A stretch of 64,000 nt of DNA, from the IMG/VR virus record IMGVR_UViG_3300046787_000200, positions 1-64,000 of that record, one strand, 5' to 3'. The notes under the pieces were generated by a model that did no database searches, had not been told where the DNA came from, and saw nothing but the letters and a program-made list of their open reading frames with translations. Position 1 is the first letter of the stretch, and every line of letters begins with the position of its first letter. Made by a program: the position numbers and the translations under genes. Below, piece after piece: positions 18,024 through 64,000 of this stretch.

Positions 18024-18025
18024 TT

Positions 18026-19036: not shown

Positions 19037-19058
19037 TAAGTAAGGATAACAACATATT

Positions 19059-26300: not shown

Positions 26301-26571
26301 AAATGATCCTAAGATACCTGCACCAAACTATAGTGGAAACCCCGCAACAACGGGTGAAACTGCTGGTACAGAAGCTCTTAGTAAGAAGATTGCTGAACAG
26401 AGAGAATTAACTGAAAAGGTGTTTGCTAAAGTTGCAGAAGTCAGAGAAGCTAGATTAGCATTTACTAAAGCAAAAAATGAACTTCCTGCAGGTGATCCTC
26501 AAATTAATGAATTGAGAAATAAATGGCTTGCACTATCAGATGAGTTAGCCGCCCTAGAAACAGTAGCATAA
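23365..26571 (+). CDS. gp5: Central spike, gp5/VgrG-like, with a long C-terminal extension
   Basis: OB-fold GVVKDNIDPIRSGRLRVY...PPDVGTTVICLFVNGD, then GHSIVMDDG and beta-helix repeats ending GSKINLN. Confidence 0.8.
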   Translation: MANNIFKPRGATSANKLGAGGAVVSPVPVFGVVKDNIDPIRSGRLRVYVSDMGGTDPDDSNSWVTVNYMTPFYGSTEATGDKTGYGTYKQNPISYGMWTSPPDVGTTVICLFVNGDPNYGYWIGCVPQPEALYMVPANGSSETAVLNQNEANSYGGAKKLPVTNINTNNDKINNSALFFNEPKPVNSYLAGVLAQQGLIRDTIRGTIGTSAQRESPSRVGWGVNTPGRPIYEGGFTDETIADAATGQGEQGNLKITSRRVGHSIVMDDGDLLGRDQLIRLRSSLGHQILMSDDGQTLFIIHANGQSYIELGKEGTIDMYSTNSVNIRTQGDLNLHADNNINMHAKKDFNFYGENINLNSDKKTNFRIGTDYNIQSLGKYTLKVGSGMSLASSGEASFASSAVTFVNGSKINLNTGSASLVPQEVKPLTTVAHTDTLHDKAKGWAAAPGTLLSITTRAPAHSPWSNANQGVDVKVDNSASANFPSAPSPAVAATNASVPGTPTAPVAPSVASTVPVTGAVSKAIGPNATNALVGAAATAAQVGPAAAAVKAGAGIVQTAGGAVPAIGKMAQTPQQMEAAGVLKPGSAVLINSLVSSGKTIEQAMTQNLFTGKPGAENVAKYINNPTAQVQTQVANYQQAQTQLTQAGVITGNEADGQIAGLVNATASVGLTTTVNYLKTASGGVSGAVTQGGKAINQMLGDVTSTISSGNYAANMGAVVTGGLSSIATSLSGIKKGIGVGISGLLDSAKGVAGSAFYAITRGFPTLKAGEPQNLKQIAEKAIADVQSSGTVPSSVADVANAAAINSGINADAIASGAASSAINGSTSINTAITTGVGTVTNIVSATENAASAVSATLPASASSGLSGLPGAQNAVATVVKGVPTVLPGAGNITSAITQVTSSISTGILSGTASTLINKLKVPGASLLGLANTGLSPALSAKLTSAISSLSSGGSVPVILPVVGEGTNNRTDLAKNFTDALNDPKIPAPNYSGNPATTGETAGTEALSKKIAEQRELTEKVFAKVAEVREARLAFTKAKNELPAGDPQINELRNKWLALSDELAALETVA

Positions 26572-50183: not shown

Positions 50184-51413
50184 ATGGCATATACAATTGT
50201 AAAAAGTGATGGTACAACACTAACAACCATTGCTGACGGTACCATAAATACCACTAGTACTTCACTGGGATTGCCCGGTAGGAACTATGCAGGTTATGGT
50301 CAAACATTAGACACAAACTTTGTTTGGTTGACAGAAAATTTTGCAGATTCTACCCCTCCTGCAAACGCAATAACTGGGCAGTTATGGTATAACACTAACG
50401 CTAATACTTTATATGTTTCTCCGGTAGACAATCCTGCAAACGCAAATGTATGGGTTTCATTAGCAGTAAGTTCATCAAATTCAACATCTACTTTCGGATC
50501 AGTTCAAGTTACAGGTAATTTAACTGCAAATAACATTACTGCAAACAATAATGTTACAAGTGCAAATGGTATATTTACTAATATTTCAGTAAGTTCTACT
50601 GCTAATATTAGCTCAGGTACTGCAAATATCGGTACAGGTAATATTGCTTCATTGTTTACACAATCTATTAATGCAGGTTCACAATCAACAGCTATATCGT
50701 TGACTGGTGTATTAACTGCAAACGGTGCAGGTACTGCAAACAGTGTTGCAGGAACAAGTATGTGGGTTACAGGTGGTAATCTTGTTGTTACTGGTTCAGG
50801 CAACGTGGGTATTAGAACTGACTATTATTACTATGCAAACGGTGCCGCAATTAGCTTTGCCGGTTCATACTCAAATAGTAATGTAGCTTCATACTTACCA
50901 ACATATAATGGTGCGATACTAGCTACAACAGTTACAGCAACAACGTTAACTACTGGTGCAAATACTACAGCCGGTACGATAACAGGTAATTTCTCACTAA
51001 GTGCAGGTTCACGTTTGAATGCTACATACGCTGACTTGGCTGAACGCTTTGAAGCAGACAGCTATTATGATGCAGGTACTGTTGTTGAAATGGGCGGAGA
51101 TAAAGAAATTACTGCTGTAGTAAACGAATTAAGCGAAGATGTATTCGGTGTTGTATCTAATACAGCGGCTTATTTGATGAATTCAGCAGCCGGTGATGAT
51201 ACAACTCATCCACCAATCGCTGTAGGTGGGCGTGTTCCTGTTAAAGTAACAGGCAAAGTTCGTAAAGGTCAACGTTTAGTTAGTGCAGGTAATGGTATTG
51301 CACGTGCGGCTAAGCCAGGTGAAGCAACAGCATTCAACATTATTGGTCGTGCATTAGAACATAAGACGACAGATGAAATAGGGGCCGTAGAAGCCTTCGT
51401 TAAAATAAATTAA
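50184..51413 (+). CDS. Tail fibre with C-terminal intramolecular chaperone / peptidase G2-like autocleavage domain
   Basis: N-terminal baseplate anchor GRNYAGYG...ENFA...GQLWYN; C-terminal YADLAERFEAD...GTVVEMGG...GVVS...GRVPVKVTGKVRKGQRLVSAG. Confidence 0.7.
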   Translation: MAYTIVKSDGTTLTTIADGTINTTSTSLGLPGRNYAGYGQTLDTNFVWLTENFADSTPPANAITGQLWYNTNANTLYVSPVDNPANANVWVSLAVSSSNSTSTFGSVQVTGNLTANNITANNNVTSANGIFTNISVSSTANISSGTANIGTGNIASLFTQSINAGSQSTAISLTGVLTANGAGTANSVAGTSMWVTGGNLVVTGSGNVGIRTDYYYYANGAAISFAGSYSNSNVASYLPTYNGAILATTVTATTLTTGANTTAGTITGNFSLSAGSRLNATYADLAERFEADSYYDAGTVVEMGGDKEITAVVNELSEDVFGVVSNTAAYLMNSAAGDDTTHPPIAVGGRVPVKVTGKVRKGQRLVSAGNGIARAAKPGEATAFNIIGRALEHKTTDEIGAVEAFVKIN

Positions 51414-51422: not shown

Positions 51423-52376
51423 ATGAGTTACGCACAATTTGGAACAATCGCGGCAGCAGACTTTAACACGTTGGTAGGAGGCAATCCTACTTCAACTGCC
51501 AATACACTAAATGCTACTTGGGCTACTGGTTCAGGTGCCGCAGGGTATGGTCAAACTGCACAAGCAAACGTATCAGTAGGTCAAACTATTGGTGCATCAG
51601 AATGGGCTAACTTGGTTAATAGAACAGCAAGTGCCGCAAGTCATCAAGGTTCAAGTATCACTAGTGTTACTGCTCCTAGTGCAGGTGGTGTCATTACTTA
51701 CTTGTCTGCTATCCCTACAAACTTGCAGACAATTTACACTAACAGACGTAATGCCGCAACACAAAGTTCTACTACAAGTAATGCAGTAACTTCCGCATCT
51801 ACATGGTCTAGTCTTGCAACATTCACGCATACAGCAACTTTTGCTAATGGAGATGCCGCACGTTATTTCTTTAACTCAGGTGGTCAATTAGCAATTACAG
51901 TATCACATGCTAATACTACATCTGGTATCAATTTGTTGTTGAATCAGTTATGTACTAACGTAGGTACAGTTGTACTAAGTTCAGTAACATCAGGAACAGC
52001 AACAATTGCAAGTACATCATATAATGGTATCACTAAAGTAGGTGGTGGCGGTAATAGTCCAACTATCTCAACAAATAGTGGATATTATAACTTGACAACA
52101 AGTAATGCTAACGTATTCTATCAAACTGCATCAACTGGTCCTTCTGGATACCTATCTACTAACATTAATATCTTTATTAAAACAAATGGAACAGTTGGAT
52201 CTAACGGTGACGTTGGTAACGTTGTTACTATCTATACAGTTTGGGACGAGATTCCAAACGGATTGACAGTTGGTACAGGTGCTACAACTACGTTGACAGT
52301 TCGTCCACCCGAAGTTACTAACTTAGCAAATACCTGGGGCACGATTAGCCTTGCAGGTTCTGTAACACAATCTTAA
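51423..52376 (+). CDS. Ser/Thr/Gly-rich virion fibre or tip protein
   Basis: Beta-rich composition; ARYFFNSGG motif; AAGGA RBS; lies in the fibre cluster. Confidence 0.55.
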   Translation: MSYAQFGTIAAADFNTLVGGNPTSTANTLNATWATGSGAAGYGQTAQANVSVGQTIGASEWANLVNRTASAASHQGSSITSVTAPSAGGVITYLSAIPTNLQTIYTNRRNAATQSSTTSNAVTSASTWSSLATFTHTATFANGDAARYFFNSGGQLAITVSHANTTSGINLLLNQLCTNVGTVVLSSVTSGTATIASTSYNGITKVGGGGNSPTISTNSGYYNLTTSNANVFYQTASTGPSGYLSTNINIFIKTNGTVGSNGDVGNVVTIYTVWDEIPNGLTVGTGATTTLTVRPPEVTNLANTWGTISLAGSVTQS

Positions 52377-52401: not shown

Positions 52402-52408
52402 CTAAATA
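52402..52408 (+). promoter_or_regulatory. Late-type promoter heading the glycosyltransferase / radical SAM operon
   Basis: CTAAATA box of the same class as those before structural genes, followed by an AGGAG RBS. Confidence 0.6.
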
Positions 52409-52425
52409 CTCGTAGGAGTAAACAG

Positions 52426-52734
52426 ATGGATACCAAAACCTTAATCAGCGAGGCGAAAGCCAGATTTAATCACAACGCTGCCAAAGCCCAATTAAAAGAC
52501 AAATATGACGGTAAGCTTATTATAGCAGATCAAGGGGGACTTTGGAAAGCGACCCCTGAACTTATTTCTTTTCTTAATTCAGCGTCAGAAGATAACTTTG
52601 TAATACTAATTGATAACTTTGATAATCCGGTACAAGTTGACAGAGAAAAACTGTTAACAGTATTAAAAAGCACACATCAAAAAGTTATGCTTGAATGGCA
52701 TAAAGAATGGAAAGAACTAGAGTCAAAACGATGA
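52426..52734 (+). CDS. Hypothetical protein (possible fibre assembly chaperone)
   Basis: Strong AGGAG RBS; first gene after the fibre genes. Function is inferred from position only. Confidence 0.6.
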   Translation: MDTKTLISEAKARFNHNAAKAQLKDKYDGKLIIADQGGLWKATPELISFLNSASEDNFVILIDNFDNPVQVDREKLLTVLKSTHQKVMLEWHKEWKELESKR

Positions 52735-53534
52735 ATAGAGGTGCAATATTATTTGCGTTCAACTCACCAAAGTTTAACTACTATGAGATGGCAGTTGCAA
52801 CAGCAAAAAGAGTAAATCATTTCTTAGATATACCTGTTACTGTAGTAACGGATGAATCATCTATTTCTGATTCGGCATATCAATTTGATAAAACTATTAT
52901 CGTAGAACCTGATAAAAGCAATAGCAGAGATTGGGGAATGTGGATCAATAAAGGTCGATACCAAGCATATGAACTAAGTCCATATGATGAGACCTTATTA
53001 CTTGATACTGACTACATGGTCAACTCAAATAAGATATTAGATGTATTCAATTACTATGATGATTTTTGTTGCCATAATAAAACTAGTTTCTTAATGCAGC
53101 CGGGTCTACCACAAGAAGTATTAAGTGTGTATAGCTTTGATACATTATGGGCTACTGTAGTTGCATTTAAGAAATCTAATCGTACTAAACAAATCTTTGA
53201 ATGCTTAGAAATGGTTCAAAAGAATTTCGAACATTACAGCAACTTACATGGATTTGTTGCAGGTACCTTTAGAAATGATTACGCATTAACATTAGCACTT
53301 AGAATTGCTAATGGACATTCAAGTGTTAAGCAAGATTTCATACCTTGGAATCTTGTTCATTTAGGTCAAAAGAATGTGCATATCTATAGAAACAATGATG
53401 ATGAATTCAATACTGAGTACACAGTAATGTATGACAACTGGCAACGTGGTAAAATCAAAAAAGAATATATTACGATTAAAGATATGGATTTTCATGTAAT
53501 GAACAAACTTAATTTTATGGAGTTAATAGCATGA
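52731..53534 (+). CDS. GT-A fold glycosyltransferase (GT8/GT71-like), copy 1
   Basis: SPYDETLLLDTDY DxD motif. The start is probably the ATG at 52731 (ATGA overlap), not 52707. Confidence 0.7.
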   Translation: MNRGAILFAFNSPKFNYYEMAVATAKRVNHFLDIPVTVVTDESSISDSAYQFDKTIIVEPDKSNSRDWGMWINKGRYQAYELSPYDETLLLDTDYMVNSNKILDVFNYYDDFCCHNKTSFLMQPGLPQEVLSVYSFDTLWATVVAFKKSNRTKQIFECLEMVQKNFEHYSNLHGFVAGTFRNDYALTLALRIANGHSSVKQDFIPWNLVHLGQKNVHIYRNNDDEFNTEYTVMYDNWQRGKIKKEYITIKDMDFHVMNKLNFMELIA

Positions 53535-54304
53535 CCCGTGGCTTTGTAATTATGGCACAGAATACAGAAAAAACTGACTATGTTAAATGTGCAAAAGTTT
53601 TAGAACAAAGCATCAAACGTGTTATGCCCGATGCCAATGTAACTATAATAACAACTGATATGTTACCATACGGTGACCAAGCTATTGATAGTGATTGGAA
53701 ACTTAATAATGATTGGCAAGTTTATGAAGCAAGCCCATATGATGAAACAATTAAGTTAGAAGCGGATATGTTTATCCCTAGAGATATCTCGCATTGGTTT
53801 GATATTTTAAGTGTTCAGGATGTAGTAATATGCACTAAAATTCGTAATTATAAAGGTGTGTTATCAGATGTGAAAGTTTATAGAAAGTTCATTGATGATA
53901 ACAATTTACCAGATACATATAACGCTATTACTTATTTTAAAAAGTCAGATACGGCAGAACGGTTTTATAAAATAGTAAGAGATGTATTTGAAAATTGGGA
54001 TGAATACAAATCAATATTAAAATGTAAACCAACAGAAGAAGCAACAACTGATTGGGTTTATGCAATTGCAAGTCATATAATAGGGGTAGATAAAACAACA
54101 CTACCGAATTTTGATGAACTATCAATGACCCATATGAAACAATTTGTTGTTGGAACTACAACAGAAAATTGGACGGACACGCTTGTATATGAAATATTAC
54201 CGCATGCATTAAGAGTGAATACATATCCACAAGAATATCCGTTTCACTATCATTACAAAGAATTTTCTGATAGAATACTAGAAAGCTACAAATGGAACAC
54301 GTAA
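53531..54304 (+). CDS. GT-A fold glycosyltransferase, copy 2 (paralogue)
   Basis: SPYDETIKLEADM; shares the RGxxxxAxN start and overall layout with copy 1. Confidence 0.65.
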   Translation: MTRGFVIMAQNTEKTDYVKCAKVLEQSIKRVMPDANVTIITTDMLPYGDQAIDSDWKLNNDWQVYEASPYDETIKLEADMFIPRDISHWFDILSVQDVVICTKIRNYKGVLSDVKVYRKFIDDNNLPDTYNAITYFKKSDTAERFYKIVRDVFENWDEYKSILKCKPTEEATTDWVYAIASHIIGVDKTTLPNFDELSMTHMKQFVVGTTTENWTDTLVYEILPHALRVNTYPQEYPFHYHYKEFSDRILESYKWNT

Positions 54305-54624
54305 TACTTTGGGAACAGCCCCCATTAGAAAAGCCTGAATTCAGATTATACTATGATGACAAGGGTAAAGTAATATGTTACTCTTGTGAAAAGATTGAAG
54401 GTAATTACATCATCATCGATGCGGCAACATACGCTGCCGGCAGACCTGACATAAGAGTAATTGAAGGTAAGATATCTACTGCTATTCCTAGTTTAGTTGT
54501 TTCAAAATTAATGCCCAATGCAGAAGGTATTACGTGTACTGAAGAAGATATTAGTATTGTAGTTGATGACAAATACAAAGATAAAATTATTAAATGGAAG
54601 CTAAACACATATGAACTCGAATGA
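54292..54624 (+). CDS. Hypothetical protein
   Basis: 110-aa ORF overlapping both neighbours. Confidence 0.7.
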   Translation: MEHVILWEQPPLEKPEFRLYYDDKGKVICYSCEKIEGNYIIIDAATYAAGRPDIRVIEGKISTAIPSLVVSKLMPNAEGITCTEEDISIVVDDKYKDKIIKWKLNTYELE

Positions 54625-55564
54625 TATTATTGACGTTGCAGACTTAGATTGCATCTATCTAAGTTATGACGAGCCACAGAAAGAAGAATTCTGGCTAAAG
54701 ATTAAGAACATGGTGCCTTGGGCAAAACGTGTCGATGGCGTTAAAGGCAGTGATGCGGCACACAAAGCCGCCGGTGAAGCAAGTGACACAGAACGCTTTA
54801 TTCTAATTGATGGCGATAATATGCCAGAAGAAAGTTTCTTTAATATTCAATTAGACTTCACCGGGAAAGACGAATCATTTAAGAAAGCACAGTTTCGTTG
54901 GAAAGCAATCAACAACATCAACGGATTGCGTTACGGAAATGGTGGTATGAGTTCTTGGACTAAAGAATATGTAGCCAACATGAAAACACATGAACATCAA
55001 AAAGATGGTGATGTGTCACGTATTGCTGACTTCTGCATGGGCGGTGATGACAATTTGTATTGGGCTATGTGGGATTGTTATTCAACTACATATCCAAATA
55101 TGACACCATTCCAAGCTTGGCGTGCAGGTTTCCGTGAAGGTGTTAAGATGAGTTTAGATAGAGGTGCTCGTCCTACAGTAGATCAATTTAAAGAAACAGT
55201 AGCAAGTCGTAACTTAGATAACTTAACAATATGGCATAATGTTGGTGCAGATGTTGAAAACGGTGAGTGGGCTATATATGGTGCTCGTCTTGGTACATAT
55301 ATGACTATGCTTACAGAATGGGATCATACTAACGTTCAATGGTTTGATAACTATATCACATTGTGGGAAGAACATGTGAATAGAGATCCTGTACGTGAAT
55401 CAGCATTGCTAGGAGCCGCACTGAATAATAAGCTAGGACTACCGATGGCTACGTTAGATGGGTTACAAAGTAAGTTCTTTAAACGTCATTATGGCGCAGA
55501 CAAATACAATCGAGGACCTCTTGTAACAGAGATGGAAGTGATTCGTAAGATTGAGGGCTGGTGA
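54611..55564 (+). CDS. Glycosyltransferase-like protein (GT-A, DGD motif)
   Basis: IYLSYDEP...AAHKAA...RFILIDGDN...YGNGG pattern with a DxD motif after a hydrophobic strand. Confidence 0.5.
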   Translation: MNSNDIIDVADLDCIYLSYDEPQKEEFWLKIKNMVPWAKRVDGVKGSDAAHKAAGEASDTERFILIDGDNMPEESFFNIQLDFTGKDESFKKAQFRWKAINNINGLRYGNGGMSSWTKEYVANMKTHEHQKDGDVSRIADFCMGGDDNLYWAMWDCYSTTYPNMTPFQAWRAGFREGVKMSLDRGARPTVDQFKETVASRNLDNLTIWHNVGADVENGEWAIYGARLGTYMTMLTEWDHTNVQWFDNYITLWEEHVNRDPVRESALLGAALNNKLGLPMATLDGLQSKFFKRHYGADKYNRGPLVTEMEVIRKIEGW

Positions 55565-56169
55565 TGATTTGGAAAAATGTTTATAGTTCAGACCCGACTG
55601 ATACCAAAGAGGCTAGTGAATATTTGAATAAACTATATCCTTATCTAAAAATTTGCGAAAATAAGAAAATTTTAGAAATTGGACCATTTAATGGGACACA
55701 CACTCAAGTTGTCAAATCGTACAATCCAGAAAGTGTTACCCTAGTAGAATTATATGAACATGCACTAATCGCATTGAAACAAGATTATTCAGACTATGAA
55801 ATAGTAGAGAATGATATATTTCACTACCTAGAAAAACCGCGTGATTTTGATGTGGTATTATGTTGCGGAGTCCTATATCATTTACATGCACCTTTGTATC
55901 TATTAGAGTTAATAGTGAATAGAATTTCCCCTCAATTTGTGTGCTTAGAATCATATGACACTAGTTTACATGCACACCAAGAAGATGACAATACTCCAGG
56001 TGCAAGGCAAATAGTACCGGGTTGGAAATCATCTAATATATCAATTCAACTTCCTAAAGAAATAATAATCACTGCTATGCAAAATTTAGGATATAAATTA
56101 AATGTATATGATGATTCGTTGGTAAAATTTAAAAATAAACCTTTTTTCTGTGTGTTTGAAAAAGTATGA
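55561..56169 (+). CDS. Class I SAM-dependent methyltransferase
   Basis: ILEIGPFNG motif I, LVE acidic motif II, FDVVLCCGVLYHL motif IV. Confidence 0.85.
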   Translation: MMIWKNVYSSDPTDTKEASEYLNKLYPYLKICENKKILEIGPFNGTHTQVVKSYNPESVTLVELYEHALIALKQDYSDYEIVENDIFHYLEKPRDFDVVLCCGVLYHLHAPLYLLELIVNRISPQFVCLESYDTSLHAHQEDDNTPGARQIVPGWKSSNISIQLPKEIIITAMQNLGYKLNVYDDSLVKFKNKPFFCVFEKV

Positions 56170-57731
56170 GCGGAGAATACGATCAATTTGCTAGAGATAT
56201 GCGTGACCGCTTAAATGCAGTCAGTCCATCTCTATGTCTTGCTAAATGGCAACAAGTAAGTTTACACTTACCAAGTGGAATGACACAAAGTTGTTATCAC
56301 CCGCCTACACATAAGATTCCACTAGAACTATTGGAAACTAAACCTAGTGCATTACACAATACGCCAATTAAAATCTACGAGCGTAAACAGATGCTTGAGG
56401 GCAAAAGACCTGAAGGTTGTAGCTATTGTTGGAAAGTAGAAGATGCTCAAAGTGATGATCCTAAAGGTCATATGAGTGATAGACATTATCGTAGTAGCGA
56501 ATGGTGGAATGCACCCACGTTTGAAGAAGTAACTACTAATAAGTTTGATTATGATGTTACCCCACGCTATGTAGAAGTAAACTTCAATCAAGCATGTAAT
56601 TTCAAATGCATGTACTGTAGTCCTCACTTATCTACAAGTTGGGAAGAAGAAATTAGAAAACACGGACCTTATCCTCTAGCAACATTATCACATAATGATA
56701 TCGGTGCATTAGAGAATAAAGGTATGATGCCACTTAAAGTAGCAAACAAAGATAACCCATACGTTGAAGCATTTTGGAAATGGTTCCCTGAAATCTATCG
56801 TAAACTACGTGTATTCAGAATGACAGGTGGTGAGCCACTTATGGACAAAAATACATTCAAAGTGTTAGACTATGTGAACGAGAATCCTCACGGTCAGCTT
56901 GAGTTATCCATTACAAGCAATATGTGTCCTCCGGATCAGAAGTTATTTGATAAGTTTGTTGAGAAAGTCAAAGCAATTGAAACACTACGCACATACGAAG
57001 ATAAAGAAAATTTTAATGAGTTCAGTGGCAATCATTGGTATGTAGATAAAGGATTCAAACACTTTTGGTTATTTGTATCATTAGACGGCTTTGGTGAACA
57101 AGCTGAATATATGCGTACTGGTTTAGAGTTTGACCGTATGTTAAATAACGTTCGTACATTCTTACGTGAAACGAAATACAGTACAGTTAGCTTCATCAAT
57201 ACTTTTAACATCATGTCTATTCCTAGCTTACATAAGTTTTTAGAAATGGTACTAGAGTTGAGAGCAGAGTTCGGTGGTCGTAGTCAAGTTGAGTTTGAGA
57301 TTGCACCCGATCAGACTGACGTAGAGAAAGAAAACAACATTGTACATAAAGTTTATAAACAAAAGAAGTTCCAGCGTGTATTCTTTGATATTCCAATCTT
57401 AAGGTATCCACCATGGTTCAGTATTCAGAATGCAGGACAATATGGTATTGATGAAGTAGAACGTTGCTTGAAGTATATGGAAGATAATGTACAAGGTGAT
57501 GACTATTTGGAAACATTCGAGGGATTTAAACCGTATGAGATATTGAAAATTAAGCGAGACCTTGCTATAATGAAAGAATCTCTACCCCAAGATCAACTCT
57601 TACTAAATAAAAAGAACTTCTACATGTTCATTACAGAATATGATAGACGCAGGCAGACGAATTTTATGGAAACTTTCCCAGAACTAAAGAGTTACTGGAG
57701 AGAGTGTATCAAAGCACATACTAAACACTAA
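56166..57731 (+). CDS. Radical SAM protein with N-terminal twitch domain, copy 1
   Basis: CNFKCMYC and MTGGEP; N-terminal CLAKW...SCYHP...CSYC. Confidence 0.9.
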   Translation: MSGEYDQFARDMRDRLNAVSPSLCLAKWQQVSLHLPSGMTQSCYHPPTHKIPLELLETKPSALHNTPIKIYERKQMLEGKRPEGCSYCWKVEDAQSDDPKGHMSDRHYRSSEWWNAPTFEEVTTNKFDYDVTPRYVEVNFNQACNFKCMYCSPHLSTSWEEEIRKHGPYPLATLSHNDIGALENKGMMPLKVANKDNPYVEAFWKWFPEIYRKLRVFRMTGGEPLMDKNTFKVLDYVNENPHGQLELSITSNMCPPDQKLFDKFVEKVKAIETLRTYEDKENFNEFSGNHWYVDKGFKHFWLFVSLDGFGEQAEYMRTGLEFDRMLNNVRTFLRETKYSTVSFINTFNIMSIPSLHKFLEMVLELRAEFGGRSQVEFEIAPDQTDVEKENNIVHKVYKQKKFQRVFFDIPILRYPPWFSIQNAGQYGIDEVERCLKYMEDNVQGDDYLETFEGFKPYEILKIKRDLAIMKESLPQDQLLLNKKNFYMFITEYDRRRQTNFMETFPELKSYWRECIKAHTKH

Positions 57732-57740
57732 GGAAAATAA

Positions 57741-59267
57741 ATGGCAGGCAAAAGACACGAAGAAAGCTTCTCAGCATACAAAGCACGACTAATCGACCCA
57801 ATCAGCGATAGCTATTGTGCCGCTAAATGGCTTAATGCTACTATCTGGTTAGGTAACGGACAAACAACTAGTTGTCACCACCCATTAGGTCACCAGATTG
57901 ATGCTAATGAATTAGTTACTAACCCATCAGCGATTCACAATACACCGCACAAGAAGTACATGCGTAAGTTGATGCAAGAAGGTAAGCGTCCACAAGAATG
58001 TGAATACTGCTGGAAGATTGAAGATATCGGTCGTAACAACATCAGTGACCGTGTTTATAAAACTGCGGTGTTTGAAGAATCAGACATTCTACATACTGCT
58101 AAAGCAGATTGGCAAGAAAATACAATGTTGAAAACATTAGAAATTTCTTTTGACCGTACATGTAACTTTGCTTGCTCATACTGCAACCCATCATTCAGTA
58201 CTACATGGGTTAAAGATATTCACAAGTATGGTCCTTATCGTAATATTGATGGTGATGCACGTAGTCACTTCATTAACGAAGCTGACCATGCTAAACCTAT
58301 CCCGGATGATATCAATCCATATTCACAAGCGTTCTGGCGCTGGTGGGAAGAAGGACTTGCTGATAACTTAGAAGAAATTCGAATTACAGGTGGAGAACCA
58401 CTCATGGCTCCTGGCGTATGGAAGTTGTTTGAATGGTTCAGAGATAACCAAGAACGTGTAAAGAATCGTCCAGATGGTAAAGTATTGCGTTATGCAGTTA
58501 ATAGTAACTTAGTACCTAAGGATGAAATCATGGACAAACTAATTGAATTAAGTCACTATGTGCCATGGTTAGAAGTATACACAAGTTGTGAAGCTTTCGG
58601 TGCACATGCGGAATATATCCGTGATGGATTTGATTGGAACAAGTGGATTCATAACTTGCAACGATTGCATACTGAAGGTAATATTAAAAAGACACACATG
58701 ATGATGACTATCAATAGTTTGTGTTTGTCTAGTATTGTACAATTTATGGATCAGATGATGGAATTCAAAAAGATTCACAATACAACTTATCCTACAATGA
58801 GCTTGAACATTCTACGTTTCCCTAGCTTCCAGTCATGTGCTATGTTGCCAATGGATATTCGTCAGAAGTATGCAAATGAATTGCAAGTGTGGTTAGACGC
58901 ACAGATTGCAGCCGATTTCAGAACAACTGAAGGCGCACCTATGCTTATGAGTATTGAGCGTGAGCAGACACAACGTTTAATTGATTACCTTGACGTTGTT
59001 AAGACTCCTCACAAAAACGTGAAAGACATTGAACAGAACCGTAGAGACTTTAAACAATTCTATGCACAGTATGATGTACGTAGAGGTAAGAGTTTCCGTA
59101 ACACTTTCCCACCAGAGTTCGTTGCGTTCTATGACAGCATTCAAACTGAACTACCTACAGCGGATGAAATTATTACAGGTAATTATCGTGCAGGGGTTGA
59201 TATGATTCCAGATCATCCGCCTGAAGATCCAAGTAAGGATGTTTTTGTTAACCCAGACTTACAATGA
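57741..59267 (+). CDS. Radical SAM protein with N-terminal twitch domain, copy 2
   Basis: CNFACSYC and ITGGEP; N-terminal CAAKW...SCHHP...CEYC. Confidence 0.9.
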   Translation: MAGKRHEESFSAYKARLIDPISDSYCAAKWLNATIWLGNGQTTSCHHPLGHQIDANELVTNPSAIHNTPHKKYMRKLMQEGKRPQECEYCWKIEDIGRNNISDRVYKTAVFEESDILHTAKADWQENTMLKTLEISFDRTCNFACSYCNPSFSTTWVKDIHKYGPYRNIDGDARSHFINEADHAKPIPDDINPYSQAFWRWWEEGLADNLEEIRITGGEPLMAPGVWKLFEWFRDNQERVKNRPDGKVLRYAVNSNLVPKDEIMDKLIELSHYVPWLEVYTSCEAFGAHAEYIRDGFDWNKWIHNLQRLHTEGNIKKTHMMMTINSLCLSSIVQFMDQMMEFKKIHNTTYPTMSLNILRFPSFQSCAMLPMDIRQKYANELQVWLDAQIAADFRTTEGAPMLMSIEREQTQRLIDYLDVVKTPHKNVKDIEQNRRDFKQFYAQYDVRRGKSFRNTFPPEFVAFYDSIQTELPTADEIITGNYRAGVDMIPDHPPEDPSKDVFVNPDLQ

Positions 59268-60664
59268 CAAATAAAATAATGCCAATATGGGGAACGGATG
59301 CTAAACCAGATCCAAATAGCCCCAATAAAGTATTTTGTATGGCTCCGTGGACACATACCTACATTAGCCCACAAAGCGAACGTAGGATGTGCTGTGCATC
59401 ACGTGAAGAACATAGTTTTCAGAAACAATACATTGATAGTAGCAATGATGAAAAATATGGTGAAGTCAAAGAATCTAAAACGTCACTAGACGCATACAAG
59501 CCGGTCAGTTTGAAAGAACACTGGAATAGTGATTACATGAAAGATATTCGTGTAAAACTAATGCGCGGTGAAGAGATCCCTCAATGTGACGTATGTAATC
59601 ATAATCTGTTGATGGAGGGTGAAAGCTACCGCGGATGGTTTACTGGTGTATTGTTTAAAGACAAGATACAACAGGCATTTGACAGCACAGATGATACTGG
59701 TCACACAACAATGGAGCCTATCTCATTTGACTATCGATTTAGTAATCTATGCAACTTCAAATGTCGCATGTGTGGTGAGCAATTGTCCAGTACATGGGAA
59801 ACTGAAAAGAAAGTTCACAATATGTGGACTGAGAAGAATCAGCCCTTTATGGTTCCTGAAATAAAATCTGCAATGCAAGACTTTCAGCAGAACGTTGTTG
59901 AACCAGAGTTCCGTGATGCAGTAAGTCGTGGCATAGTTGAAGAAATGTATTGGGTTGGTGGTGAGCCATTGATGTATGATGTGCATTGGTGGACACTAGA
60001 AGAAATGCTAAAGAATGGCAGTGCTAAGAATTGCTATATGCGTTACAATAGTAACTTAAGTCGTGTACAATTTGGACAAAAGAACTTGTATGACTATCTA
60101 CCTCACTACAAAGATTGGATGATGTGTGCAAGTATTGATGGTACAGGTGAGATTGTAGAATACATCCGTACGGGTATTAAATGGGATAAATGGCTAGATA
60201 ACTTTAAACAAGGATTAGCATTACCCGGCGGCAAAGATAAGATGAAGTTAGACTTAACTATCACTGCCCCAGGAATGTTCTCGTTGAAAGAATTGTTTGA
60301 CTTAAGTATTGAGTTAGATGTTGAAATCATTACTAAGATTACATTTGCATTTCACCCTGATATCATGTGGAGTCCAACTAGTTGGCCACGTGAGATACTA
60401 AATGAAATGGTAGATGATATCATTAATTATTGTCAGCCAAGAGCTACATGGAAGCAACGTAGCTTTATTAGCAACTTACAGGCATTAAAAGATAGTCGCA
60501 AGACACATGAAGAAGAATGGCCAGATACATATAAAACAGCAAGATTGAATGGTAAACGTTGGGTTGAACATTTAGAAAAGATACGCGGTGATGAAAAAGT
60601 CACAATGCGTAATATATATAGTCGCAACCCTAAATTATTAACATGGTGGGATAGTATACAATGA
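59264..60664 (+). CDS. Radical SAM protein with N-terminal twitch domain, copy 3
   Basis: CNFKCRMC and WVGGEP; N-terminal CMAPW...MCC...CDVC. Confidence 0.9.
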   Translation: MTNKIMPIWGTDAKPDPNSPNKVFCMAPWTHTYISPQSERRMCCASREEHSFQKQYIDSSNDEKYGEVKESKTSLDAYKPVSLKEHWNSDYMKDIRVKLMRGEEIPQCDVCNHNLLMEGESYRGWFTGVLFKDKIQQAFDSTDDTGHTTMEPISFDYRFSNLCNFKCRMCGEQLSSTWETEKKVHNMWTEKNQPFMVPEIKSAMQDFQQNVVEPEFRDAVSRGIVEEMYWVGGEPLMYDVHWWTLEEMLKNGSAKNCYMRYNSNLSRVQFGQKNLYDYLPHYKDWMMCASIDGTGEIVEYIRTGIKWDKWLDNFKQGLALPGGKDKMKLDLTITAPGMFSLKELFDLSIELDVEIITKITFAFHPDIMWSPTSWPREILNEMVDDIINYCQPRATWKQRSFISNLQALKDSRKTHEEEWPDTYKTARLNGKRWVEHLEKIRGDEKVTMRNIYSRNPKLLTWWDSIQ

Positions 60665-61356
60665 GTAAAAATATTTTAGTAGTAGGTGGTGGCACACCGG
60701 GTAAGTTTGGAAATCAATTTGTTAAAAAAGCTAGAGATGATGGACATCGTGTAGTAAATTTCTCGCATAAGGATCATAATACTGGACATATAGACGATAG
60801 ACATATCAACTATAATGACATTAGACAAGTTAAAAATAAATGTGCAGAATTATCAACTGAAATGCCAGTAATTGATATTATCCTGTTCAACCAAAATGGA
60901 GCGGGATATCCCGGAACAGTTGAACAATTATTTAAAGAACCAAATTTACTTGAATATAATCAAACAATAACTAGAGCAGTAACTGTACCTCATCAGATTA
61001 TTGCATCGTTGTATAACAACTTAATCCCTGGTAGTAGAGTAGTATATATGGGTTCTACTATGTCATTCTTATACGAACGTGAAAATTACACAGAACATGT
61101 AGGCTACCCTAGTGCTAAATCATTTGCTATGCATTTAATATCAGCTATGGCAAAAGGTAGAACTAAAGAAATTACATTTAGTTGTATGTGTCCTTATTTC
61201 TTATATGATAAACCAGACTTGTATGAAAACATTTTTGACCAAACGTACAGCTACATCTTAACACATGATGATAGTTTTAATGGAAAAATAGTAAATCAAT
61301 TAAACGGCTTTGAGAATCCATACGTGCCGGGTAAAGTAACTTATGCAAAACAATGA
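60661..61356 (+). CDS. Short-chain dehydrogenase/reductase
   Basis: Rossmann ILVVGGGTPGKFG, ILFNQNG, catalytic Ser in YMGS, and YPSAK (YxxxK). Confidence 0.75.
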   Translation: MSKNILVVGGGTPGKFGNQFVKKARDDGHRVVNFSHKDHNTGHIDDRHINYNDIRQVKNKCAELSTEMPVIDIILFNQNGAGYPGTVEQLFKEPNLLEYNQTITRAVTVPHQIIASLYNNLIPGSRVVYMGSTMSFLYERENYTEHVGYPSAKSFAMHLISAMAKGRTKEITFSCMCPYFLYDKPDLYENIFDQTYSYILTHDDSFNGKIVNQLNGFENPYVPGKVTYAKQ

Positions 61357-62563
61357 TGACACATGGTGCGTATTGCCATGGTCACATCTATATGTAGGAC
61401 CTAATGGTAAAATTGCACCTTGCTGTGTAGGTAAAACATTGGGTGAGTACGGAGATACTACCTTAGAAGAAGCATGGAACAGTGATGCCATGAAACAATT
61501 ACGCATAGACATGACAAATGGCGTAAAAAATGATATATGTTCATCCTGCTATAAAAAAGAAGATATGGGATTTAAGTCAATGAGACAGAATTCCAATGTC
61601 ACAATGAAAGATGTTGCAGACGTAGTTAGGACAACCTCAAATAGTGATGGATCAATTGACGAATTTAAATTGTACTATTTAGATTTACGATTTAATAATC
61701 TTTGTAATTTTAAATGTAGAACATGTAATCCATTCTTTAGTAGTTCGGTTGCAGTTGAGCATATGCAAAACACCTCATTGAAAAAATTTCACAAAACGCC
61801 AGAACGTGGTATTATTCAAAACAACAATATACTTTCAGAAATAGAAAAACAATATCCCAATGTAACTAGAATATATTTTGCAGGTGGCGAGCCAATGATG
61901 CAAGAAGAACATTGGAACATTTTAAAGTATTATGTTGATAATGATACTGCTAAAAATGTAGGTCTAGTATATTCTACTAACACTAGTAGATTAACATATA
62001 AAACCAATTCAGTATTTGACTATTGGAAACACTTTAAAAGTGTACATGTACAAACAAGTATTGATGCTGAAGGTAAAAGAGCAGAATATTGGAGAGACGG
62101 TACTGTTTGGGAAGACATACTTACTAATATAAAACTTATTAAAGAAAGCAAAGTTCAATGGTCTATACATAGTGTAATCTCTTGGGCTAATGTTTATAGC
62201 TATGTAGAATTAGTTAAAACATTATTACAAGAAAAATTATCACTCGGGTATAATTTTACCATATGGTGCTTAGATGAAAGCCATGAATTTAACTTACAAG
62301 AATTACCTGACTTTAAAAAACAAGAAATAGCAAGTATGCTAGATACATTTATTGTAGAGTTAGAAGATGGTAAATTTGGTAGATATTTAGGTGAACCTGT
62401 AATAAAAACAAATATAGAAAATATTAAAATGTTTATGTTTGCTAAATCAATACCTATAAATAAAGAAAAATTTGAAAAACATTTCATACTAGATGGTATA
62501 AGAAATAAGGATTTCTTTGAGTACTTCCCCGAACATGAAAACATGAGAGAATATATACAATGA
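61343..62563 (+). CDS. Radical SAM protein with N-terminal twitch domain, copy 4
   Basis: CNFKCRTC and FAGGEP; N-terminal CVLPW...PCC...CSSC. Confidence 0.9.
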   Translation: MQNNDDTWCVLPWSHLYVGPNGKIAPCCVGKTLGEYGDTTLEEAWNSDAMKQLRIDMTNGVKNDICSSCYKKEDMGFKSMRQNSNVTMKDVADVVRTTSNSDGSIDEFKLYYLDLRFNNLCNFKCRTCNPFFSSSVAVEHMQNTSLKKFHKTPERGIIQNNNILSEIEKQYPNVTRIYFAGGEPMMQEEHWNILKYYVDNDTAKNVGLVYSTNTSRLTYKTNSVFDYWKHFKSVHVQTSIDAEGKRAEYWRDGTVWEDILTNIKLIKESKVQWSIHSVISWANVYSYVELVKTLLQEKLSLGYNFTIWCLDESHEFNLQELPDFKKQEIASMLDTFIVELEDGKFGRYLGEPVIKTNIENIKMFMFAKSIPINKEKFEKHFILDGIRNKDFFEYFPEHENMREYIQ

Positions 62564-63738
62564 GTAACACTCTATGCGTATTGCCCTGGATGCATTTAGC
62601 CACACACCCAAACGGTGGTGCAAGTCTTTGTTGTCGCAGTAATCACACTGATGCAATTAGTTGGGCAAAGAAAACAGATAGTCACAATCTAGTTATGCTA
62701 GATAATGATAGTGTTTCCGATATAATGAACAGCGACAAGTTTGTTGAAGTAAGGCAAGCTATGATTGATGGAAAACGTCCAATTGAATGTGAAGGATGTT
62801 GGAGTGATGAAGATAAAGGCATTAAAAGCAAACGACAATATGAGAATGAGCGTTGGGCACACATTATCCCTAAACTTGAAAAATCAGCGAAACTACAAGA
62901 CATTAATTTAATATATGTGGAACTACGTTTGGGTAATGTGTGCAACAATGCCTGCTTAACTTGTAACAGTTATAGCAGTACTAAGTGGTATCCAGATGAA
63001 AAGAAGATATCAAATGATTTACCTTGGTTTCAACTACGACCAATGGAAAACTTTAAGTGGTTTGAGAAAGAAGAATTCTACTATGACTTAGCAAACAAAA
63101 GTAAGTCTGTAGAAGAAATCTATATCAACGGTGGCGAACCTACAATGATTAAGGCTCACTTTGAATACTTAAAGCACTTGATTACATTGGGTACAGCACA
63201 GAATGTTCACTTAGTTTATAGTTTGAACATGATGGATATACCAGACAGATTGATTGAGTTGTGGAAAGATTTTAAACAAGTTACAGTTAATGCAAGCATT
63301 GATGATTTAGGTGAACGTAACTATTATATTCGATATCCAAGTAAGTGGGAAGAAACAGTTGCAAGTATAGATAAATTAAATAAACTATCTAATGTCAATT
63401 GGCATGTAACACAAACTGTTAGCATACTAAACATATATCATTTAGCAGAATTTGGACATTGGCTTGAGACAAACTACAACAAGACACCTCATCATAATTA
63501 TGTACTGTACCCTGATTATTTGAGCATTGCGGCATTGCCCGATTATTATAAAGAAGAATTACGTAGTCATTATTCAAATAGATTACATGAATGGCAACGT
63601 AAAGATTTGTTTAATAAATTGCATGAGCCTTACCAACCCGACTTGCTAAAGAAAGCAAAAGAGTTTATACTAGCAGTTGACAAAGCACGTGGATTAGATT
63701 ATAAAAACTATATACCGGAACTAAAAGACATACTATGA
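62560..63738 (+). CDS. Radical SAM protein with N-terminal twitch domain, copy 5
   Basis: CNNACLTC and INGGEP; N-terminal CVLPW...LCC...CEGC. Confidence 0.9.
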   Translation: MSNTLCVLPWMHLATHPNGGASLCCRSNHTDAISWAKKTDSHNLVMLDNDSVSDIMNSDKFVEVRQAMIDGKRPIECEGCWSDEDKGIKSKRQYENERWAHIIPKLEKSAKLQDINLIYVELRLGNVCNNACLTCNSYSSTKWYPDEKKISNDLPWFQLRPMENFKWFEKEEFYYDLANKSKSVEEIYINGGEPTMIKAHFEYLKHLITLGTAQNVHLVYSLNMMDIPDRLIELWKDFKQVTVNASIDDLGERNYYIRYPSKWEETVASIDKLNKLSNVNWHVTQTVSILNIYHLAEFGHWLETNYNKTPHHNYVLYPDYLSIAALPDYYKEELRSHYSNRLHEWQRKDLFNKLHEPYQPDLLKKAKEFILAVDKARGLDYKNYIPELKDIL

Positions 63739-64000
63739 TACCAATTATACCAGACAAAATTAAAGACTCATTCTGTTCAGCTAAGTGGCTGATGGCTACT
63801 ATGCACTTTGGTATGGGTGAAAATCATAGTTGCTATCACCCACCTATTCATCGCTGGAACTTAGAAGATGTAAAACGTGATCCTAGTATGCTACATAATA
63901 CACAGCATAAGATTGAACAACGCAGACAGATGATGAATGGCGAGAAGCCAAAAGAATGTTACTATTGCTTTGACATGGAAGCAATCAATCCAGATGTTAT
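63735..64000 (+). CDS. Radical SAM protein with N-terminal twitch domain, copy 6 (partial, runs off the right edge)
   Basis: Hand translation gives MIPIIPDKIKDSFCSAKWLMATMHFGMGENHSCYHPP...KPKECYYCF, the same twitch type as copies 1 and 2; ATGA overlap. Confidence 0.85.
   Translation, partial: MIPIIPDKIKDSFCSAKWLMATMHFGMGENHSCYHPPIHRWNLEDVKRDPSMLHNTQHKIEQRRQMMNGEKPKECYYCFDMEAINPDV

Follow-up and report, generated by a model that had tools for sequence, protein, structure and literature searches.

A predicted sugar-tailoring operon with fourteen radical-SAM enzymes next to the tail-fibre genes of an uncultured jumbo phage

Directly after its tail-fibre genes, a 352-kb uncultured jumbo phage with T4-like core genes carries a 27-kb late-type operon of glycosyltransferase-like, sugar-tailoring and fourteen radical-SAM enzymes that most likely builds and edits a glycan inside the infected cell, probably on virion proteins. 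We hold this reading at a probability of roughly one half. The analysis began from a 64,000-nucleotide stretch (the window; positions 1 to 64,000 of IMG/VR contig 3300046787_000200), in which an earlier note had described a run of at least 13 co-oriented, overlapping genes encoding three DxD-type GT-A proteins, a methyltransferase, an SDR and six paralogous twitch radical SAM proteins behind a late-type box. That observation is confirmed, the main correction being that the feature does not end at position 64,000: the window cuts the system roughly in half, and on the contig the run comprises 25 genes (g1-g25). The note's interpretation, a late-expressed pathway that builds a glycan and then oxidises, epimerises or methylates it on virion proteins, is supported in part. 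A virion-protein acceptor is plausible but nothing shows it, nor that the radical SAM enzymes, whose substrate is not known, act on sugar, while the tight transcription unit, its position after fibre-like genes, the twitch-type radical SAM enzymes and a glycan-chemistry reading are supported. Literature searches returned no paper on such an operon and none naming the radical SAM family or its NCBIfam accession, and an array of 13 members of this family in one viral operon is new.

Table. Features of the fibre-linked cluster within the window (positions are those of the contig; NF033640 cut-off, 170 bits).
Feature	Position	Strand	Assignment	Supporting observations
Fibre-like gene (u409)	50184..51413	+	Fibre-like protein, 409 aa; candidate glycan acceptor (inferred)	Ala/Thr/Gly/Asn/Ser-rich shaft; weak C-terminal match to an intramolecular-chaperone domain (Pfam Peptidase_G2 IMC domain, 24.4 bits, cut-off 25); PHROG virion structural protein; precedes the cluster in relatives
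Last fibre-like gene (u317)	51423..52376	+	Fibre-like protein, 317 aa, 30% Ser+Thr; candidate glycan acceptor (inferred)	No family match; immediately upstream of g1 in every related locus that extends that far; RsoM2USA has a fibre-like gene with similarity to it in that position
CTAAATA box	52402..52408	+	Late-promoter-like box	Followed by AGGAG (52414-52418) and the g1 start codon (ATG at 52426); a [C/A]TAAATAC box is conserved 17-24 nt upstream of g1 in 10 related contigs
Whole gene run	52426-79020	+	25 co-oriented, mostly overlapping genes	Extends 15 kb beyond the window
g1	52426..52734	+	Conserved 102-aa protein of unknown function	No meaningful family match (one Pfam hit far below its cut-off); orthologues at 28-81% identity, including RsoM2USA
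g2	52707..53534	+	GT-A glycosyltransferase-like protein, predicted GT8-like fold	DTD motif with an invariant second Asp; D102 invariant
g3	53531..54304	+	Paralogue of g2 (about 20% identity)	EAD in place of DxD; joint alignment with g2 shows shared invariant residues
g4	54292..54624	+	Conserved 110-aa protein of unknown function	No family match; orthologues at 26-79% identity
g5	54611..55564	+	GT-A-like N-terminal domain plus novel helical C-terminal half	Conserved D67-x-D69; one of the most conserved genes of the block
g6	55561..56169	+	Class-I SAM-dependent methyltransferase; accessory	Pfam and NCBIfam hits, among them weak class-I hits to Methyltransf_11 at 25.2 bits (cut-off 21.2) and NodS at 25.0 (cut-off 24); no orthologue found in any related locus, several of which carry an unrelated protein of about 222 aa there
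g7	56166..57731	+	N-terminal-twitch radical SAM enzyme, g7-type	NF033640 290.8 bits; Cys24, 43, 85, 88 plus C144xxxCxxC; the paralogue most tightly linked to the GT module; directly follows g5 in RsoM2USA
g8	57741..59267	+	N-terminal-twitch radical SAM enzyme, g8-type	NF033640 295.1 bits; 51% identical to the RsoM2USA protein next to the SGNH and carbamoyltransferase genes
g9	59264..60664	+	N-terminal-twitch radical SAM enzyme	NF033640 311 bits; Pfam SPASM hit at residues 25-112, ahead of Radical_SAM at 158-315
g10	60661..61356	+	Short-chain dehydrogenase/reductase-like protein (marginal); accessory	adh_short 25.4 bits, just under the 26.6 cut-off; Y149xxxK153 and Ser132/135 present; found in 3 of the related contigs
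g11	61343..62563	+	N-terminal-twitch radical SAM enzyme	NF033640 337.2 bits; SPASM hit at residues 9-70, ahead of Radical_SAM at 118-272; variable among relatives
g12	62560..63738	+	N-terminal-twitch radical SAM enzyme	NF033640 350.5 bits; Cys6, 25, 77, 80 plus C128xxxC132xxC135, invariant across all 13 paralogues
g13	63735..64000	+	N-terminal-twitch radical SAM enzyme, cut by the window end	Complete on the contig at 63735-65021, where it scores 284 bits on NF033640; twelve more genes follow

Within the window the genes overlap by 4-28 nt except for one 9-nt gap between 57731 and 57741, and across the roughly 26.6-kb run the intergenic distances range from -28 to +84 nt with no convincing + strand terminator. 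The CTAAATA box is not enriched overall (14 found against about 21 expected) but is extremely enriched by position, being strongly concentrated upstream of structural genes. Eight of 19 copies in the first 82.6 kb lie in the 2% of DNA that is intergenic, each 17-89 nt upstream of a same-strand start, including those of the portal and a virion structural protein gene. Further boxes precede g15 and g17. Late timing of expression rests on this motif alone, and none of the 25 proteins has a membrane segment.

The three GT-A proteins have no Pfam, NCBIfam or PDB sequence match, nor a sequence-level match to any curated GT family, and only predicted structure supports them. For g2 (AF2 pLDDT of 85) the best Foldseek match is glycogenin (GT8; E of 6e-8, TM about 0.5), followed by the Skp1 alpha-galactosyltransferase, UGGT, LARGE1 and GlyE, several of the best-matching enzymes being ones that glycosylate proteins. 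Identity is only 14-16%, there is no Pfam Glyco_transf_8 match, and an extra C-terminal beta-rich region is not part of GT8. An HMM built from the joint g2-g3 alignment finds both genes in all relatives. The g5 model is confident (pLDDT of 92.6) but its structural matches are weak (TM of 0.2-0.34), although the top-ranked hits are nearly all GT-A-fold glycosyltransferases or nucleotidyltransferases, among them the chlorovirus PBCV-1 capsid-glycosylating transferase and a mycobacteriophage Che8 glycosyltransferase. The g5 family is very widespread (more than 8000 clusters at 90% identity and 1132 representatives at 50% identity), and homologues of 444-809 aa are fused to GT-B glycosyltransferase domains (EryCIII/GT28/UDPGT).

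A glycan-chemistry reading is strengthened by genes beyond the window, which the note could not have taken into account. The last gene, g25, encodes an O-carbamoyltransferase of the NodU/CmcH family: both Pfam domains score above cut-off (159 and 119 bits) and the solved enzymes NovN, GdmN and TobZ match with E values of 7e-52 to 1e-33, although at 501 aa the phage protein is shorter than these enzymes (576-702 aa) and its acceptor is not known. Three further proteins (g21, g22, g24) are SGNH/GDSL-like, with GDS or GCS plus D-x(1-2)-H conserved. GDSL proteins are the top PDB profile hits (E of 0.014 and 0.067), hhalign between the two families gives 95.8% probability, and a homologue carries a faint precomputed Lipase_GDSL hit. 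In contrast, the methyltransferase and the SDR, which the note counted as part of the system, are variable accessories, each absent from most relatives.

Fourteen radical SAM enzymes are encoded, against the note's count of at least six. One (g20) is a classical radical SAM/SPASM enzyme, and thirteen are deeply diverged paralogues of the uncharacterised NCBIfam family NF033640 (twitch domain-containing radical SAM protein, N_Twi_rSAM). Twelve paralogues score 166-367 bits on NF033640, eleven of them passing the curated cut-off over the full model length, while the thirteenth (g23) scores 222 bits against an HMM built from the other twelve. All 13 keep C-x18/19-C...CxxC followed by CX3CX2C. The note compared these proteins with BtrN, the butirosin 2-deoxy-scyllo-inosamine dehydrogenase, which likewise combines a CX3CX2C core with a four-Cys auxiliary-cluster domain. 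The N-terminal residues 9-93 of the phage family do align to the C-terminal part of BtrN (residues 162-259), and a sugar or cyclitol substrate would fit the neighbouring genes, but the twitch domain is N-terminal here and the domain order is thus permuted relative to BtrN. The core is more similar to the peptide maturases TvgB (E of 2.5e-14) and SkfB, its closest solved relatives.

This similarity leaves room for a rival view, in our judgement unlikely, in which the array modifies amino-acid residues directly, as RiPP or protein maturases do, through epimerisation or C-C, C-S or C-O cross-links in the fibre proteins or in the conserved small proteins g1 and g4, while the glycosyltransferases and hydroxyl-tailoring enzymes act in parallel on the same protein. 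Secondary NCBIfam hits go to many peptide or protein maturases, including PapB, CefB, XyeB, YhhB, DarW, HxsB/C and QhpD, and, as in radical SAM/SPASM RiPP maturase clusters, multiple auxiliary-cluster radical SAM enzymes occur in one operon. A small-protein family recurs beside the radical SAM genes in three bacterial loci, its member in the one locus with Pfam annotation being PqqD, and bacterial arrays occur without any glycosyltransferase. However, no RRE or PqqD domain, recognisable precursor peptide, protease or exporter lies in the phage cluster, and the auxiliary domain is N-terminal with a single cluster motif. g1 has no Cys and g4 has three, the fibre proteins are Cys-poor (a 6291-aa protein is 0.3% Cys), the twitch domain aligns best to that of the cyclitol/sugar oxidase BtrN, and the radical SAM genes are interleaved and translationally coupled with enzymes that typically act on sugar hydroxyls.

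The order u409-u317-g1-g2-g3-(g4)-g5-g7 recurs in about 20 IMG/VR contigs, in three phage-like contigs binned into MAGs and in the cultured Ralstonia phage RsoM2USA. The note had specified in advance that scattering of these genes away from structural genes in relatives would count against a virion role, and the comparison gave a mixed answer: the fibre-to-GT linkage is kept, but in RsoM2USA a separate module of a g8-type radical SAM, two SGNH genes and a carbamoyltransferase lies about 90 kb from the fibre-linked module, which is partly the scattered arrangement. The late-type promoter and the position in the structural region joined to fibre genes speak against hypermodification of phage DNA, for example glycosylation and further tailoring of hydroxymethyl-pyrimidines to evade host restriction, which we regard as very unlikely. 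Phage glycosyltransferases that act on DNA are well known, some DNA glycosyltransferases have GT-A-like folds, all enzymes here are cytoplasmic, and in two relatives a dCMP deaminase gene follows the carbamoyltransferase. Yet the cluster has no hydroxymethylase, DNA kinase, PLP enzyme or other known DNA-hypermodification component, although the rest of the 352-kb genome was not examined, and an array of fourteen radical SAM enzymes has no precedent in DNA modification, none having turned up in the literature searches.

The bacterial members of the radical SAM family found here are almost all from Bdellovibrionota, and their mixed gene contexts do not settle the function. Arrays of the same radical SAM subfamilies in Bdellovibrionota lack the g2, g3 and g5 families, and many sit in housekeeping contexts such as ATP synthase, Pst, PrmA and RsmE. 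One Bacteriovoracales locus joins N-twitch radical SAM genes to a DegT aminotransferase, a carbamoyltransferase, GT1, MBOAT and an ABC-2 exporter, and bacterial loci often carry ABC-type exporters next to the radical SAM genes (the ATPase in 9 loci and the ABC-2 permease in 6). These neighbours are compatible with two further readings. In the first, which is doubtful, the operon makes a free, diffusible, heavily tailored oligosaccharide or pseudo-oligosaccharide (aminoglycoside- or orthosomycin-like), or modifies a soluble host metabolite, the product acting on the host or on competitors rather than decorating the virion. The solved enzymes most similar to g25 act on small-molecule natural products, BtrN-type twitch chemistry is known from aminoglycoside pathways, all proteins are soluble and no acceptor gene can be identified. 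Against it, the phage cluster has no scaffold-forming enzyme (cyclitol synthase, aminotransferase or NDP-sugar synthase) and no exporter, the promoter is late-type, and synteny with fibre genes is conserved across distant phages. In the second, the least likely, the pathway remodels a host cell-envelope glycan precursor, for example to block superinfection or to alter receptors. GT8 enzymes include LPS core glycosyltransferases, and SGNH and carbamoyl decorations are common on surface polysaccharides, but the cluster has no membrane protein, lipid-carrier transferase, flippase or polymerase, and late expression shortly before lysis would, by inference, give little time for envelope remodelling.

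Taken with these observations, we favour a soluble, cytoplasmic pathway that assembles a glycan and then tailors it heavily. In this model transcription starts late in infection at the CTAAATA box in front of g1, with further boxes before g15 and g17, after which the two GT8-like retaining GT-A enzymes (g2, g3) and g5 transfer sugars from host NDP-sugars onto a soluble acceptor. Hydroxyl groups would then be decorated by g25, by g21, g22 and g24 as O-acyl transferases or esterases and, in this phage, by the methyltransferase g6. The thirteen N-terminal-twitch enzymes and g20 would each abstract a hydrogen atom at a different position of the product, with oxidation, epimerisation (the SDR g10 being a possible ketoreductase), deoxygenation or cross-linking as possible outcomes. 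The fold assignment of the glycosyltransferases is shown; their activity, the radical SAM chemistry and the acceptor are inferred, timing is inferred from motif position only, and no enzyme activity, glycan or modified virion protein has been observed. The lack of any NDP-sugar biosynthesis gene or aminotransferase in the phage cluster also counts against this model. In the tree, several paralogues fall into deep subfamilies that also have members in related phages and in Bdellovibrionota, which points to distinct, non-redundant specificities. The most likely acceptor is a virion protein, either the Ser/Thr-rich fibre proteins encoded immediately upstream or the 6291-aa protein, since the GT module stays joined to those fibre genes across very distant relatives and no lipid-carrier, flippase or exporter gene is present.

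Virus-encoded GT-A enzymes also sit beside structural genes in the virion glycosylation systems of phages and giant viruses (mycobacteriophage Che8/Corndog-type glycosyltransferases, Freeman et al., 2023, PMC10527164; chlorovirus PBCV-1 A64R), and assembly on soluble proteins in the cytoplasm would fit the absence of membrane components here. Those systems contain a few glycosyltransferases (plus a methyltransferase domain in chlorovirus) and no radical SAM enzymes, whereas the present cluster has 14 together with a carbamoyltransferase and SGNH-like proteins. The base composition of the cluster matches the rest of the phage.

The DNA examined forms the first 64,000 positions of IMG/VR contig IMGVR_UViG_3300046787_000200, which is 352,012 bp long, and the same contig was read onward to follow the gene run beyond position 64000. 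The window carries T4-like structural genes, including those for the major head protein, the portal, a gp46-like SbcC nuclease, and baseplate hub and gp6-like wedge proteins. Directly after the wedge gene lies a single ORF that is very large for a phage protein (20% Ser+Thr and 0.3% Cys) and presumably encodes a giant baseplate or fibre protein. Three fibre-like genes follow, of which the 409-aa product (u409) has a Ser/Thr/Ala/Gly/Asn-rich shaft and a weak C-terminal match to an intramolecular-chaperone domain, while the 317-aa product (u317) is 30% Ser+Thr. A megablast search of the region against cultured phages returned no match, so that no cultured phage is close at the DNA level.

Positions of the features discussed in the text (contig numbering unless another sequence is named)
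Feature	Position	Strand	Description
Major head protein	3335-4531	-	
Portal	7457-9250	-	
916-aa protein	9275-12025	-	C-terminal lysozyme/endolysin-type domain; next to the portal gene
CTAAATA boxes	12038-12059 and 19021-19036		Two back-to-back divergent pairs in intergenic regions between oppositely oriented genes
Second hub-like protein	23365-26571		
Giant ORF	30487-49362	+	6291 aa
Fibre protein u409	50184-51413		
Fibre protein u317	51423-52376		
CTAAATA box before g1	52402-52408		Followed by AGGAG and the ATG
First gene of the run, g1	52426 (start)	+	102 aa
g5	54611-55564	+	
End of the gene run	79020	+	
Protein after g25	79028 onward (17668-21251 of locus L023, a later stretch of the contig)		At least 1194 aa
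Second g5-like gene of RsoM2USA	216629-217330 of RsoM2USA		Truncated, 233 aa; directly after the g7-type radical SAM gene
Gap in the bacterial radical SAM array of locus L070	11410-12249 of L070		840 bp

The gene layout claimed in the earlier note was fully confirmed, as the thirteen + strand ORFs all overlap by 4-28 nt except for a single 9-nt gap. The CTAAATA motif is not over-represented in total (14 copies against about 21 expected), but its placement is far from random. In the first 82.6 kb of the contig 98% of the DNA is coding, yet 8 of 19 copies lie in intergenic DNA, each 17-89 nt upstream of a same-strand start, including those of the portal and a virion structural protein gene. The canonical T4 late box TATAAATA is depleted in the window, with 1 copy against about 11.5 expected, whereas a [C/A]TAAATAC box sits 17-24 nt upstream of the g1 orthologue in ten related contigs. 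This is good evidence for a late-type promoter class shared with structural genes; it is not evidence of actual timing, and as no transcript data were at hand, late expression together with the structural genes is neither supported nor contradicted beyond the motif. Downstream of position 64000 the same strand continues without a convincing terminator to give 25 genes in all (g1-g25), so that the system is twice as long as the window shows.

HMM searches, which the earlier note had named among the first checks of its gene assignments, place thirteen of the products in one radical SAM family. The five complete radical SAM proteins in the window score 291-351 bits over NCBIfam NF033640, 'twitch domain-containing radical SAM protein', for which the curated cut-off is 170 bits. 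Seven further proteins downstream belong to the same family, including the one cut by the window end (284 bits) and g16 (181 bits); together g7, g8, g9, g11, g12, g13, g15, g16, g17, g18 and g19 score 181-367 bits, while g14, at 166.2 bits, falls just below the cut-off. The thirteenth paralogue, g23, was not scanned against NCBIfam but scores 222 bits against an HMM of the other twelve. In addition g20 is a classical radical SAM protein with a C-terminal SPASM domain. The thirteen paralogues are only 17-47% identical to each other, yet every one keeps the pattern C-x18/19-C(C)...C-x2-C followed by CNxxCxxC, with these Cys columns invariant, in agreement with a CX3CX2C SAM-cluster motif preceded by an N-terminal Cys-rich twitch domain. 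Binding of two [4Fe-4S] clusters and reductive cleavage of SAM were not assayed.

The enzymes are therefore twitch-type, as the earlier note proposed, but with the auxiliary-cluster domain moved to the N-terminus. Pfam SPASM-type and NCBIfam twitch regions lie at residues of about 6-112, ahead of the Radical_SAM domain, in contrast to BtrN-type sugar/cyclitol dehydrogenases where the twitch domain is C-terminal to the core. A profile of the family aligns its N-terminal 9-93 residues to BtrN residues 162-259, the C-terminal part of that enzyme. Only this twitch region aligns to BtrN (E about 1e-5), while the core matches TvgB, SkfB, Tes and viperin better, so the comparison with BtrN across the core points neither way; oxidation of a secondary alcohol on a sugar or cyclitol was not measured. 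The core is most similar to TvgB (8vpo, a cyclopropylglycine synthase; PMC10878394), SkfB, the archaeal tetraether synthase, viperin, BlsE and MoaA, a spread that does not identify the substrate class. Direct radical modification of protein residues is a rival reading, which we consider unlikely but the strongest of the alternatives. Neither an adjacent precursor peptide nor an RRE/PqqD-like recognition domain, as would be expected of a RiPP-type maturation cluster, was found in the phage cluster. A tblastn search with g12 hit KVP40-like vibriophages, but that gene lacks the N-terminal twitch part and sits beside a QueC-like gene; it is probably a different kind of radical SAM enzyme and was set aside. 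PADLOC defence models gave only a trivial viperin-level hit.

Among the remaining genes, g2 and g3 have no sequence-level family, with no match in Pfam (including Glyco_transf_8), NCBIfam or PDB profiles and nothing useful in PHROGs, so that fold prediction was needed. The AlphaFold model of g2 (pLDDT 85, pTM 0.87) gives 122 PDB matches at E<=0.001, of which the 50 best listed are all glycosyltransferases, led by GT8 glycogenin (E 6e-8, TM about 0.5) and followed by the Skp1 alpha-galactosyltransferase, UGGT, LARGE1 and GlyE. This supports a predicted GT-A Rossmann-like fold for g2, whereas g3 is assigned by paralogy only. g2 carries a DxD metal and nucleotide-sugar motif (D100-T-D102) and g3 has E-A-D in its place, with the second Asp (D102 of g2) invariant across 22 g2/g3 sequences.

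The g5 family is very large, with more than 8000 clusters at 90% identity and 1132 representatives at 50% identity, all without a Pfam domain. Searches of g5 against Pfam, NCBIfam, PHROG and PADLOC models gave no match, and the best PDB profile hint is GmaR at E 0.13. The g5 model is confident (pLDDT 92.6) but matches known structures only weakly (TM 0.2-0.34 at E 1e-4 to 1e-2), mainly over the N-terminal 135-200 residues. The top-ranked matches are nearly all GT-A-fold glycosyltransferases or nucleotidyltransferases, including hyaluronan and cellulose synthases, RmlT, TarP, SunS, the PBCV-1 transferase that glycosylates the chlorovirus capsid and a mycobacteriophage Che8 glycosyltransferase; with matches this weak, assignment of g5 to the GT-A (GT2-like) fold stays undecided. 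D67-x-D69 is conserved in at least 90% of 55 diverse homologues. In a recurrent architecture the g5 domain follows a GT-B (EryCIII/GT28/UDPGT) glycosyltransferase domain in proteins of 715-809 aa, with a shorter 444-aa variant.

Of the presumed tailoring genes, g6 is a class-I methyltransferase with marginal scores, and g10 is SDR-like (25.4 bits against a cut-off of 26.6) with YxxxK and Ser present. Outside the window, g25 is a clear NodU/CmcH O-carbamoyltransferase, with Carbam_trans_N and Carbam_trans_C domains above cut-off (118.7 and 159 bits), a match to the PHROG 'Nol-like carbamoyltransferase' at E 2.8e-94, and NovN, GdmN and TobZ as its closest solved relatives. The products of g21, g22 and g24, also outside the window, are homologous to each other (hhalign probability 95.8%). 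g21 and g22 have invariant G-D-S and D-x-H, while g24 has G-C-S and D-x-x-H, to be compared with the block I GDS(L) nucleophile and block V DxxH of SGNH/GDSL proteins. Their best PDB profile hits are GDSL proteins but reach only E 0.014 and 0.067, no Pfam hit was obtained, and a homologue carries a faint precomputed Lipase_GDSL hit, so that membership of this class is suggested without being settled; we treat them as probable SGNH-type O-acyl transferases or esterases. Both g1 and g4 (110 aa) are conserved and of unknown function. None of the 25 proteins has a hydrophobic stretch compatible with a membrane segment. No pyrimidine hydroxymethylase, DNA-base kinase or transferase, or deazaguanine gene was found among g1-g25, although the remaining roughly 270 kb of the genome was not examined, and we regard hypermodification of phage DNA as very unlikely.

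Whether the block stays joined to fibre genes in related phages, and how its copy number varies, had been put forward in the earlier note as a test of a virion role, and both were examined. About 20 IMG/VR contigs share the order u409-u317-g1-g2-g3-g4-g5-g7-g8-g9-g12-g13-...-g19-g20-g21-g22-g23-g24-g25, and in those contigs a protein of 1200-1640 aa follows g25. The variable genes are g6 (no orthologue found outside this contig), g10 (three contigs), g11, g14-g17 and g23, so that radical SAM copy number varies among relatives. More distant contigs (g5 at 59-65% identity, radical SAM at about 35-47%) keep the same layout with fewer radical SAM genes. Three contigs binned into MAGs named Haliscomenobacter, Neomarinimicrobiota and Fischerella carry the phage-type order fibre-g1-g2-g3-g5-g7 and are probably jumbo-phage contigs mis-binned into bacterial genomes. 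The cultured Ralstonia jumbo phage RsoM2USA, whose annotation is entirely 'hypothetical protein', has fibre-like-g1-g2-g3-(184 aa)-g5-g7-type radical SAM in one place, and about 90 kb away a second module of g8-type radical SAM, two SGNH-like genes and a carbamoyltransferase. The GT module plus g7 is thus persistently joined to fibre genes, while the tailoring module can be separated from them. The cluster directly follows fibre-like genes in this phage, in about 20 relatives and in RsoM2USA, in agreement with the placement of glycosyltransferase genes in or next to structural genes in phage virion glycosylation systems.

A scan of one genome per species with a g7/g8-type alignment returned 38 loci, nearly all from Bdellovibrionota MAGs and some on contigs of 0.47-1.9 Mb, a distribution that may reflect gene transfer or hint at the host. 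Several carry tandem arrays of 7-9 N-twitch radical SAM genes, for example locus L070 on a 1.89-Mb chromosome with four nearly identical copies, but none carries the g2, g3 or g5 families. In a tree of 130 sequences the phage paralogues fall into deep subfamilies, with the g7-, g8-, g9-, g12- and g18-types each interleaved with bacterial members; the paralogues are therefore old, differentiated lineages rather than a recent expansion. Gene contexts in bacteria are mixed. One Bacteriovoracales locus combines the radical SAM genes with a DegT aminotransferase, a carbamoyltransferase, GT1, MBOAT, an ABC-2 exporter and a PqqD gene, and small proteins homologous to the latter lie in two more bacterial loci. 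ABC ATPases recur in 9 loci and ABC-2 permeases in 6, whereas other copies lie beside ATP synthase, pst, prmA and rsmE genes. These contexts do not decide between a sugar substrate and a protein substrate. Flagellin genes near bacterial homologues suggested flagellin glycosylation, but in the one such locus with Pfam annotation the radical SAM gene lies between pst transport genes and prmA/rsmE, several genes from either flagellin gene, and the idea was dropped. A precursor-peptide ORF was sought in the gap inside the L070 array, where only short ORFs that look like fragments of an insertion sequence were seen.

Three kinds of enzyme in the run typically act on hydroxyl groups of sugars, namely the carbamoyltransferase, the SGNH-like proteins and the methyltransferase, and these are interleaved and translationally coupled with three GT-A-type proteins and the radical SAM genes. 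Together with the fusion of g5 to GT-B domains, this makes a glycan (or polyol) product the best-supported reading. Since all the proteins are soluble and no lipid-carrier or export gene is present, assembly should take place in the cytoplasm on a soluble acceptor. The late-type promoter and the conserved junction with fibre genes make virion proteins the leading candidate acceptor, in parallel with mycobacteriophage and chlorovirus virion glycosylation. While the gene order and its conservation were observed directly, the identity of the acceptor is inference, no glycan having been looked for on virion proteins, and we place the whole chain at a probability of about 0.5. The interpretation in the earlier note, of a late glycan-building and tailoring pathway acting on the virion, is partly supported, while its observation held and the finding is larger and stranger than the note reported. 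A free small-molecule product is an unlikely alternative, and remodelling of the host envelope is the least likely of those considered.

A more speculative possibility, which we hold only tentatively, is that the thirteen N-terminal-twitch subfamilies are a toolkit for editing a protein-linked glycan after it has been assembled, each enzyme epimerising, oxidising, deoxygenating or cross-linking one defined sugar position on the tail fibres and so turning a simple glycan made from host NDP-sugars into a highly unusual one. In that case this would be a first assigned function for NF033640 and, to our knowledge, the first radical-SAM glycan-editing pathway in any virus, as well as a system shared by gene transfer with predatory Bdellovibrionota.

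Virus-encoded glycosylation and tailoring clusters are already known; what is unprecedented here is the radical SAM component. Fourteen Fe-S radical enzymes in one viral operon is far beyond any phage known to us, and implies a product of unusual chemical complexity and a heavy demand on host Fe-S assembly, SAM and reductant late in infection. Literature searches for the family name and its accession, for g5, and for phage radical SAM enzymes together with glycosylation found nothing relevant or comparable, and candidate papers that were examined proved unrelated. Neither NF033640 nor the g5 family has an assigned function, and the operon offers a genetic context in which both could be assigned, with the reduced version in RsoM2USA making the finding testable and giving an experimental entry point. 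If the product decorates the virion, it would extend virion glycosylation from mycobacteriophages and giant viruses to abundant environmental jumbo phages, and would add radical chemistry to the ways viruses diversify their surfaces.

The large protein encoded just after g25 has no Pfam, PHROG, PDB or cultured-phage match. It carries four repeats of a W-x-PDP-..-PPYIY-x-FGN module, and its complete homologues in two related loci (1567-1639 aa) end in a g5-like domain whose DxD motif has been replaced.
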